Of a DNA stretch of 64,000 nucleotides, positions 40,101 to 42,827 are shown piece by piece; position 1 is the stretch's first letter; every line of letters starts with the position of its first letter. The notes under the pieces were generated by a model that saw only the letters and a list, made by a program, of their open reading frames with translations, was not told the DNA's origin and did no database searches. The stretch spans positions 5,518,001-5,582,000 of the forward strand of contig OZ176050.1 of assembly GCA_964247055.1 (NCBI GenBank), in the 5' to 3' direction. The position numbers and the translations under genes are program-made. The stretch comes from Paragordius varius. Its lineage: Eukaryota > Animalia > Nematomorpha.

Positions 40101-42827
40101 AAAAAGATTTCGTCGATGTGTCCAATTCCCTGTATGTGATATAATATGAAATTTAAAGCTAAAATTTCTAATCCTATATAATATAAAATATCTTTTTTCA
40201 AATTATTTTTAAGTGGGTTTAATGGAATAAATATTTAACAAAGATAAAAATTGATATTTTATACTATACTAGCTATGCTTTATTACCCGCTGTGACTTAG
40301 TCGAAAATATGATATAATTCATGCATTCGTTAAGGAAATGGCCCTAATTATAATTTAAACGGTACTACACGTTTTCTGAATCATTGCTTAAATTATTTTT
40401 ATAAGTGGGGGATGTATTTTAAATAGGGTGGGCCCCTACTAATTTACGGCCATTATATTTTTTGACGTTATGAGATAATCTTGAACATTGAATGAATTCG
40501 TGTGTTATCATATATTTTGTGGAATAAAAACATTTTTGTGAAAATCGCAATTATACAAGTGGCGGTGCACAACTCAGAGGCTCTCACAAAAAATGGCTCG
40601 ACTAATTTAGAGAATTATAAGTTTATAAAACATATGTTACATTTTTAGAAAAATTGCTGTTTGCTAAAACTCTAAATTGAACTGTTCTGAGAGCTAATTC
40701 AAAAGAGTTGCTCTAATATGCTAGGTGTTATAAATTAATAAAGATTATTCAATAATGTATTTTTAATTCAGGTGTTCAAAACTGCTTGAAAGCTGCTAAC
40801 TAACAATTTTAATATCTAGATATTTATGGCAAGTTAATTACTCGCATAAAGCCTCAATTGTTTCACAATTCACATAGATATATTGATTTAATTGACACGT
40901 TTTAGCAATCAATGAGCACAATGAGGTTTTACCAACGCCAGAAGGGCCATGAATTAAAATTGACCGTATAAACTCTAGAATATAAAAAATTTATGAAATA
41001 AAACATTAATTAATATGTAAAAATAAAACCCAAATTGTGATAAAAAGTATATTATTTATATTATTTTTAATAATGCGACAAAATGTTCCAATCAATAAAA
41101 GAAAAAGCATTTATAATCAAGTTAATTACGAAATATTCAATTACATACTGTAAAGGTCTGTAATTTAAAAGCATAATTAAAATTGAGGTAGTTGACTACC
41201 CGGATACAAACAAAAATTACGGATATTTCTAAAGATAACAACGTAAGTTTTTAGTTATACACAATGGCTTAACAAACTATTTGGGCGATTTTTAAGCGTT
41301 AAAAAATATATTTTACATTTTCGTTAATCAATGTCAAAATGCATATTTTTAATTTGATTACACATGGGCTAGTTACCAATATTTAATGATAAATGCATCT
41401 ATCATAAAAGTGCTTTTATAGTGTAGTCTTTGCACTCAGGAGCACATATCGTTTTACTAATGTATATGTATAAAAAAAGTTGGATCTGATCGATTATGAA
41501 TACATTTACCTAGGGTGCTTGAAATAACCAGTCAAACGTAAATTATTTATATCTCATTATTAAAATTATGGTAAAGTGGGGTGACCATATCAAAATTATA
41601 TTAAGTTTTATCAACTGTTTAATATGTTGTTGTTGTTTAACAATCAGTTTCGATGGTGCACCATCGGAAACTATCCAGCTTTTTATGAAATAGTTCTTTA
41701 TCAATACACTCTGTTTTTGGCAGTTTGAGTTGTTGGAAATCTAGATTAATTTTTTAGGCCCAAGTTAAACGAAGACGACAGGGCTTATTGTTTCCGGGTG
41801 GGATGATGTCGAATGAGGTTCTGATCGGATTATCAGGATTCATTGAAATCATTACTTTAAAAATGTAACATCATTTTGTTTGGTTTAGTTACAAAATATA
41901 TTTGACATTTATCGTAATAAATGCTTATGATAACAAACTGCATTTATAAGCGGTAAAGAACGATTATATTTTTGCCTTATTAAAAGCCTTACATTATGTG
42001 TAAAGTTATTTCCTAATTACGGATAATTAAATGCTTACCTTGGCAATAATTCTCTTTGTTTTCGATTCTATCGTGTATTTCCATTATTTTAGATTCAATA
42101 TTTTTGTTAACATAAAAATGTTCGACCTCGGAAACTTTTTCTATAAAATTGGGTAAAAGCGTAGACAAGTCCAATTTTATACGATTTAATATTTTAGATG
42201 TAACTTCATCAAAAGAAACAACCAATCTAATTTTTGTATATTTATTTATACTGTAAAATTCCGAATTTTCACCTATATTTACAATAAAAAACAAAACTTA
42301 TTGATTTTTCATCATTCAATTGACTAATAACATAAGTATTATTTGTTAGAAATAGAGGCGTAAGCTCAGTTCGTATGGCCAAAGGCTCTAAATTATTATA
42401 AAATAAATAAACTAATTATTTCGTAAAATAAAAGTTGACATTCATCATATGAAAGCAATAATTTCATATTGTTGTCGGTTTTCGTTGCGACTATTTCCAC
42501 ATCTTGAGCAATTTTCACATTTTCAATAGGAATAATTGAGTAGGCATAAGTTAAATTTGTCGGAACTAATATATATAAATCTATTTAAACTATCAAAATT
42601 TATTGAAATTTCATCAGGTTGTATTAAATTGTCAATCCAAATTGTAATAGATTTCCTCGTTATAATAATATTATTATCTAAAATTTGAAAGATAACATTT
42701 TGTGATATTTTAAGATTTAAATCTTGGAGGATCTTTGGGTTTATATAGGCGTATAAATATTGAGATGTGTTAATTCCTGAAAATAAAATAATACAATACT
42801 TTTTTTAATTTTCGTAAATAATTTCAT
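34177..42827 (-). CDS. AFG2A: AFG2/SPATA5 (Drg1)-type type II AAA+ ATPase, 15 exons, 739 aa
   Basis: Exons 42827-42800, 42776-42591, 42565-42413, 42387-42298, 42272-42039, 40974-40842, 40129-39952, 38633-38496, 37940-37799, 37611-37517, 37204-36995, 36690-36551, 36086-35966, 34975-34799, 34371-34177. All introns are GT-AG, phases are consistent, and the CDS totals 2220 nt. D1 has GPSGVGKT. D2 has [75 protein letters not shown] in D2 favours AFG2/SPATA5 over p97 or NVL. The N-terminal exons are less certain than the AAA exons. Confidence 0.85.
35404..35861. mobile_element. Putative TTAA-flanked MITE in an AFG2 intron
   Basis: TTAA-CACTCATTAATA at the left end and TATTAATGAG-TTAA at the right end: a short imperfect TIR plus TTAA. 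Confidence 0.4.
39450..39715 (+). mobile_element. 5'-truncated RTE LINE 3' end in an AFG2 intron
   Basis: Translates to [18 protein letters not shown]...[13 protein letters not shown], the C-terminal RTE motif RLRW.GH...GRP..W. Ends in a (GAT)n tail. Confidence 0.75.
41625..41852 (-). mobile_element. 5'-truncated RTE-like LINE 3' end with a terminal stem-loop and (CAA)n tail
   Basis: The minus strand reads [45 protein letters not shown], then a palindrome at 41651-41666, then AACAACAACAACA. Confidence 0.65.

Follow-up and report, generated by a model that had tools for sequence, protein, structure and literature searches.

Putative introns of 23 to 26 nt at the 5′ end of an AFG2A-like gene in the hairworm Paragordius varius

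Can the 5′ end of a conserved animal gene be interrupted by several successive introns shorter than 30 nt, when introns further downstream in the same gene are hundreds of nucleotides long? The question is raised by an AFG2A-like ATPase gene on the minus strand of a 64,000-nt stretch of the genome of Paragordius varius (Nematomorpha; assembly GCA_964247055.1, contig OZ176050.1, positions 5,518,001 to 5,582,000 of the forward strand). This whole stretch is referred to below as the window, and positions are counted from its first letter. An initial annotation, made from the letters alone, had listed four introns of 23, 25, 25 and 25 nt in the 5′ part of this gene. We found these four segments as listed, together with a fifth of 26 nt that was missing from the earlier list, and we consider it very probable that the segments are genuine ultra-short spliceosomal introns (micro-introns).

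Frame-restoring GT..AG segments in the 5′ part of the gene

The 5′ part of the gene can be read as six exons separated by five micro-introns, as follows.

42800..42827, minus strand: exon 1, ATG plus 25 nt (9 codons and 1 base)
42777..42799, minus strand: micro-intron 1, GTATTGTATTATTTTATTTTCAG, 23 nt, GTATTG..TTTCAG, phase 1; the sole GT..AG solution of 12 to 119 nt that joins both frames
42591..42776, minus strand: exon 2, 186 nt, 62 stop-free codons in DNA of about 25% G+C, without a Met
42566..42590, minus strand: micro-intron 2, GTTTAAATAGATTTATATATATTAG, 25 nt, GTTTAA..ATTAG, phase 1; the sole GT..AG solution of 12 to 119 nt; if retained, a stop follows 65 nt past the intron start
42413..42565, minus strand: exon 3, 153 nt, 51 stop-free codons
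42388..42412, minus strand: micro-intron 3, GTTTATTTATTTTATAATAATTTAG, 25 nt, GTTTAT..TTTAG, phase 1; frame restored, with one 28-nt alternative (42439-42412) that starts with GTC
42298..42387, minus strand: exon 4, 90 nt, 30 stop-free codons
42273..42297, minus strand: micro-intron 4, GTTTTGTTTTTTATTGTAAATATAG, 25 nt, GTTTTG..ATATAG, phase 1; frame restored, with alternatives of 28, 22 and 52 nt that start with GTC or GTG
42039..42272, minus strand: exon 5, 234 nt, 78 stop-free codons
42013..42038, minus strand: micro-intron 5, GTAAGCATTTAATTATCCGTAATTAG, 26 nt, GTAAGC..ATTAG, phase 1; the sole GT..AG solution of 20 to 30 nt; retention leads to a stop 8 codons on
41935..42012, minus strand: exon 6, candidate donors at 41992, 41961, 41938 and 41934; frame open until the TAA at 41911

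The ATG at 42827 is the first one past the in-frame stop at 42878-42876 (minus strand). Exon 2 contains no Met and therefore needs the start in exon 1, which is reached via micro-intron 1. For the four segments of the initial annotation, the coordinates, lengths, GT..AG ends and phase were all present in the sequence as claimed, three of the four begin with GTTT, and none has a length that is a multiple of three (3n). The phase is the same in all five micro-introns, each of which splits a codon after its first base. All five start with GTA or GTT, and they finish with TAG (four introns) or CAG (one intron). The remark that no branch-point consensus is recognizable was loosely true: TTTAT or TTAAT occurs in each intron, with an A located 7–12 nt from the 3′ end, and these motifs carry no weight since they are expected by chance at 73–92% A+T.

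Retention of any single one of the five micro-introns shifts the frame and results in a stop 14–65 nt past the intron start, which agrees with the frame shift described earlier and extends the early stops to every intron. The open frame from the ATG at 42827 had also been described as continuing into the exon with the Walker A motif after four removals. Four removals do open the frame, as far as 42039 and no further; the Walker A exon is not reached, and the fifth intron is required.

Comparison with chance

At a G+C content of about 25%, roughly one codon in 11 should be a stop, so that runs of 62, 51, 30 and 78 stop-free codons are unusual in themselves. The longest frame in 42016-42830 with up to three GT..AG jumps of 20–30 nt was sought with a dynamic programme. 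The best jump-spliced open frame was 717 nt long and used three jumps, compared with a mean of 194 nt and a maximum of 344 nt in 200 shuffles; on the opposite strand, the same programme returned a best frame of 182 nt. When all 144 pairs of donor and acceptor dinucleotides containing G or C were compared, GT..AG solved all five junctions with segments of 20–30 nt, and the runner-up solved three of the five. At junctions 1 and 2, no GT..AG segment of 12 to 119 nt other than the intron of the initial annotation joins the frames.

Micro-introns in conserved genes of the same genome

The same class of micro-intron exists in conserved genes of this genome. Three control introns were pinned by alignments to solved structures that neither dropped nor added a residue. 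The first, a 23-nt phase-1 intron, belongs to ISY1, which lies in this window at a distance of 11 kb (plus strand, 31486-31508, GTAAAATTACTTGTAATTTCTAG). Residues 1–62 of human ISY1 are matched by the exon ending at 31485 and residues 64–136 by the one read from 31511; because the split codon supplies residue 63, exactly 23 nt must be removed. The other two controls are found in CCT4 (TCP-1 delta), where an intron of 25 nt (L036:700-724, phase 1, GTATTT..TTTAG) and one of 26 nt (L036:778-803, phase 0, GTTATT..TTTAG) flank a 53-nt exon (G000:C1, ~9887284-9887387) and the next intron is approximately 570 nt long. On CCT-delta, the three CCT4 pieces match the residues up to 45, residues 46–63, and the residues from 64 onward, which places the junctions at 45/46 and 63/64. 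All three control introns are located in the 5′ region of their gene, start with GTA or GTT, and end with TAG. The controls share with the AFG2 micro-introns the GTW start, the TAG end (in four of the five), the 5′ position within the gene, and the presence of long introns further downstream. Most introns of the CCT gene family were hundreds of nucleotides long, and its two micro-introns came from CCT4 only.

The NSF gene (L001, G000:C5:5684347-5687769) is made up of a single exon of 665 codons followed by a 73-nt phase-1 intron; therefore, some conserved genes here have few introns and no micro-introns. In another AAA gene, a single stop at L009:1570-1578 (minus strand of the locus) parts two long open frames that are in the same frame, after the Walker A exon. 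This stop could belong to a micro-intron of 3n length that carries a stop.

Identity of the gene

AFG2A/SPATA5, whose yeast counterpart is Afg2/Drg1, has two AAA rings and is the type II AAA+ ATPase of the 55LCC complex. The downstream part of the hairworm gene comprises the following features.

40841..40974, minus strand: D1 Walker A exon, open frame 40990-40841; acceptor ..AG / 40974 or ..AG / 40972; Pfam AAA, E = 5e-6
34180..40152, minus strand: remaining AFG2A-like exons, open frames 40152-39943, 38633-38490, 37940-37776, 37642-37514, 37207-36995, 36690-36550, 36121-35933, 34984-34751 and 34377-34180

The downstream open frames carry AAA motifs (Pfam), and the introns between them are approximately 300–1800 nt long. 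The exons are collinear with the 893-aa seal 'ATPase family gene 2 protein homolog A' and with mollusc homologues. Thus, the D1 Walker A exon aligns to AFG2A residues 388–417, the D1 arginine-finger region to 493–537, the linker to 578–624, the D2 exons to 624–693, 694–738, 742–780 and 780–841, and the C-terminus to approximately 845–875. Identity of the D2 exons to AFG2A homologues was 57–67%. Among eukaryotic proteins, the C-terminal D2 exon scored highest with AFG2A (57.5 bits), followed by yeast Afg2 (52 bits), p97 (50 bits) and AFG2B (44 bits). An archaeal VCP-like ATPase outranks AFG2A for this exon by summing two domains. The D2 Walker A exon did not discriminate among solved structures (p97, 126 bits; AFG2A, 124.5 bits), and a D2 exon search of 1.84 billion representatives yielded general AFG2/p97 relatives, none above 57% identity, and nothing closely related. 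Together with the collinearity of the exons, the ranking of the C-terminal D2 exon among eukaryotic proteins bears out the AFG2 label of the initial annotation, and, as judged from these alignments, the assignment of the gene as the nematomorph orthologue of AFG2A/SPATA5 holds. No intron-free processed pseudogene or paralogue was found; the locus is single-copy.

The hairworm gene and AFG2A have in common the two AAA rings, the collinear order and the D2 identity given above, but the hairworm D1 is diverged, its N-domain is not alignable, and the segment preceding Walker A was not found. The Walker A motif is GPSGVGKT in D1, which is unusual, and GPPGCSKT in D2. Among solved structures, nothing matched the D1 Walker B region at E = 1. 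By its predicted sequence, D1 is strongly diverged.

The D1 Walker B region (39943-40152, minus strand) reads ..VVIDNIE.., with Asn at the position usually occupied by the catalytic Glu, in an alignment of 1.3 bits. This sequence and the unusual Walker A motif suggest that D1 may be incapable of ATP hydrolysis.

Weighing the interpretation and its alternatives

Several results weigh against the interpretation of the five segments as micro-introns of the AFG2A-like gene. A GT..AG length scan of 272 kb, limited to open frames, showed no peak at 22–27 nt over the background. In the same 272 kb, GT..AG was no more frequent than control dinucleotides at any length, whether junctions were taken singly (20–60 open codons on each side) or in chains; the open-frame histogram is swamped by chance junctions and is uninformative in either direction. 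Searched exon by exon, the N-terminal part had no Pfam match, and exon 5 had no homologue among 5.8 billion proteins. Comparisons with N-domains gave weak scores: the AFG2-type N-domain profile touches model residues 19–50 (exon 2), where CDC48-type N-domains begin, with only 1.6 bits, and the hhalign alignment, although collinear over junction 2, was not significant (P = 0.15). The read contigs, which were obtained from four runs (X1, X3, X4 and X5; two samples and one run under a different organism label), are DNA only and contain no splice joints at the five introns; none of the sequencing runs listed for this stretch is recorded as RNA. Junctions 3 and 4 admit other GT..AG solutions (28 nt at junction 3; 28, 22 and 52 nt at junction 4). 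Finally, the connection between exon 6 and the Walker A exon is putative and could be made by more than one donor/acceptor pair, and the canonical segment upstream of the D1 Walker A was not detected.

The alternative that survives best accepts the micro-introns as real and takes the chain from 42827 to approximately 41912 as a separate small gene, with the ATPase starting near its Walker A motif, for example at the ATG at 41110. Past micro-intron 5, the frame runs for 35 codons to the TAA at 41911, and a protein ending there and standing alone would be approximately 265 aa long; an ATG-initiated open frame (41110-41009) is located just upstream of the Walker A exon; and no homology links exons 2–5 to the N-domains of AFG2. 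However, both parts are on the same strand, and there is no other candidate for the N-domain of a two-ring AAA protein whose relatives all have one. The Walker A exon is located approximately 1 kb downstream of the end of the exon 6 frame. All four exon 6 donors (41992, 41961, 41938 and 41934) are phase-compatible with both Walker A acceptors (first exon base 40974 or 40972), so that one intron of approximately 1 kb could join exon 6 to the Walker A exon. The DNA between the two parts is largely dispersed repeat, as follows.

41625..41843, no strand assigned: 219-bp dispersed repeat inside the long intron, with loose ends at 41624 and 41843 in the read contigs

This repeat, which looks like a short interspersed nuclear element (SINE) or a miniature inverted-repeat transposable element (MITE), is present in at least 40 copies (78–90% identity) on many contigs (C1-C10), and its depth in the read contigs is approximately 100 times that of its flanks.

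Exon 2 also bears on the separate-gene explanation, because it weakly resembles the start of a CDC48-type N-domain and lies where such a domain would be expected relative to the N-terminus. In the Atlas, the neighbours of this exon were AbrB/MazE-type barrels at 0.87, under the threshold of 0.9. Such barrels are regarded as relatives of the double-psi barrel that CDC48 N-domains contain. The Atlas search with exon 3 returned noise only. Exon 2 is possibly the start of a CDC48_N-like domain, and a separate small gene is, on this evidence, unlikely.

It is also fairly improbable that introns 3 and 4 are real and use sites other than those listed above, namely 28 nt at 42439-42412 for intron 3, and 28, 22 or 52 nt around 42324-42251 for intron 4. 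All of these solutions are GT..AG and frame-compatible, but they start with GTC or GTG and one ends with AAG, whereas the control introns and introns 1, 2 and 5 start with GTA or GTT and end with TAG or CAG. Introns 3 and 4 as listed match the GTW..TAG form of the pinned control introns; the rival junctions do not. The rival segments are also richer in G+C, and they shorten or alter exons that are otherwise open. Within the preferred interpretation, we infer three points from sequence: that the segments are excised from RNA, which exact junctions introns 3 and 4 use, and that the 5′ part is joined to the Walker A exon.

That there are no introns at all, and that the pattern reflects chance frames in AT-rich DNA, a decayed pseudogene with frameshifting insertions, or an error of assembly, is very improbable. 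In favor of this explanation are the DNA-only read contigs, the N-terminal exons without homologue, and the fact that chance GT..AG junctions are common genome-wide when 20–25 open codons are taken on each side. However, open frames of 62, 51, 30 and 78 codons occur at this locus in DNA of 25% G+C and no shuffle comes near them, GT..AG alone solves all junctions, and the locus is single-copy, with the rest of the gene intact and conserved. In addition, the intron segments were present in the DNA contigs of two samples, and their presence in independent DNA excludes an assembly error. Removal of the segments from DNA, in the manner of the internal eliminated sequences of ciliates, has only the resemblance in size and the analogy with Paramecium in its favor and can be dismissed, since the genome is that of an animal with the standard code, the segments end in GT..AG and not TA..TA, and no DNA contig in the four runs is without them, which refutes elimination for these samples.

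Intron length, phase and genetic code

The initial annotation had set these introns beside those of Paramecium, in which avoidance of stop-free short introns of 3n length is a signature of nonsense-mediated decay (NMD). Paramecium proved to be the wrong frame for the host, because its genetic code is the standard one. A ciliate code was considered and dismissed: the exons are delimited by TAA and TAG, neither of which occurs in frame, and every Gln codon in exons 1–5 is CAA. The NSF protein is closest to that of a hairworm, 'Gordionus sp. m RMFG-2023' (78% identity), and the next matches are arthropods at 64%.

A signature of 3n avoidance driven by NMD was likewise unsupported, for the introns are too few and a 24-nt, stop-free allele of intron 1 is common. 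By chance, no 3n intron would be expected with a probability of approximately 0.2 among four introns and approximately 0.13 among five. None of the eight micro-introns, controls included, is 3n (P ~0.04-0.07), in a sample that is small, assessed post hoc, and partly picked for that property. The 24-nt allele originates from a T inserted behind 42791 (plus strand), which was found in 157 of 351 depth units in run X1, 40 of 100 in X3 and 221 of 382 in X5 (40–58% of the depth in three runs and two samples) and which makes the length of intron 1 3n. When retained, this allele reads AGT ATT GTA ATT ATT TTA TTT TCA GGA, in frame and stop-free, and its frequency argues against a strict 3n rule. None of the 12 indels that were listed, of 28, falls in exons 1–5. 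A polymorphism in exon 4 (42372 C>T, plus strand) changes Arg to Gln.

Phase 1 was observed in seven of the eight micro-introns; five of these seven are the finding itself, and one of the CCT4 controls is phase 0. The all-phase-1 pattern is real in AFG2 (five of five), and it is no rule of the class.

In the 25-nt introns of Paramecium, 3n avoidance has been described together with 'spell-checking' by NMD (Bondarenko and Gelfand 2016, PMC5014332). The hairworm micro-introns have the same size, and their retention likewise leads to a premature stop; Paramecium differs in belonging to another kingdom, in using another genetic code, and in having only tiny introns, and 3n avoidance is not demonstrable in the hairworm (PMC5014332 for Paramecium). 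Any role of NMD at the hairworm locus is one that we only infer.

Introns of this size in other animals

If the preferred interpretation is correct, the 5′ end of the nematomorph AFG2A/SPATA5 gene would be interrupted by five successive U2-type GT..AG introns of 23, 25, 25, 25 and 26 nt, and the exons of 28, 186, 153, 90 and 234 nt would encode an N-terminal domain that is poorly conserved. Further downstream, the gene would have introns of approximately 0.3–2 kb, the first of which would bear the 219-bp repeat. Recognition of the micro-introns would occur by intron definition and would depend on minimal signals: a 5′ GTW, a 3′ TAG or CAG, and probably a branch A approximately 15–17 nt from the 5′ end. 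Failure to remove any one of them would shift the frame and bring a stop within 65 nt.

Introns shorter than approximately 30 bp were considered absent from animals before the study of Hadjez et al. (2026, PMC13644364), in which, among 51 species, such introns were found in myxobolid Myxozoa (medians of 22–27 bp) and Dicyema japonicum only. These introns have a 5′ signal pared down to GTa and a short 3′ signal, with weak A residues upstream of the AG (PMC13644364). In Henneguya, short introns neighbor other short introns, and such introns have often been dismissed as annotation errors; the authors predict that further lineages will be found, and Nematomorpha do not appear in their main text (PMC13644364). 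The hairworm micro-introns resemble those of myxobolids and Dicyema in their GT..AG ends, in belonging to the 22–27 nt class, and in their minimal 5′ and 3′ signals (PMC13644364). In contrast, the myxobolid and dicyemid introns have a median of 22–27 bp in compact genomes, whereas the hairworm genome is 110.56 Mb long (44 contigs) and rich in repeats. Unlike those animals, the hairworm also has repeat-bearing introns of 0.3–2 kb in the same gene, and the 3′ end of its micro-introns is nearly always TAG.

Parasitic flatworms offer a second comparison. Tapeworms and Gyrodactylus have bimodal intron lengths, with modes of about 32 and 58 bp in the latter (Hahn et al. 2014, PMC4040987). These worms share with the hairworm two size classes of intron per genome, biased by ordinal position in the gene, but their short mode is 32–36 bp or more, not 23–26, and they belong to another phylum (PMC4040987). 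In the literature, no link between hairworms and short introns was found: the Gordionus genome paper is silent on introns, and the Current Biology hairworm genome paper was outside the scope of the search.

We advance only tentatively, as a possibility that we would not bet on, that Nematomorpha are a third, independent animal lineage with introns shorter than 30 nt, which would here form a discrete 5′-end class in a repeat-rich genome with other introns of up to kilobases, unlike in myxobolids and dicyemids. On this view, AFG2 would owe its five successive phase-1 micro-introns to a process specific to the lineage that acts on 5′ gene ends, be it intron gain or a control of intron size according to position, and not to general compaction. 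If confirmed by RNA, the micro-introns would show that intron miniaturization can be uncoupled from genome compaction, and the hairworm would be a natural system for the study of one spliceosome that handles introns of both 23 nt and 2 kb. Given their usual minimum intron lengths, gene finders would probably truncate or split such genes, and gene models truncated or split in this way would inflate the apparent 'gene loss' in the phylum.

Other features of the window

Positions 1-27791 of the window are occupied by a 27.8-kb tandem array with a 62-bp unit (approximately 435 copies, 80–93% match). Its G+C content is 27% and its GC skew is +0.6, with nearly all G on one strand, and the array ends abruptly at approximately 27791. 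Directly after this satellite, positions 28000-30500 form a stretch of 33% G+C, which may be a mobile element.

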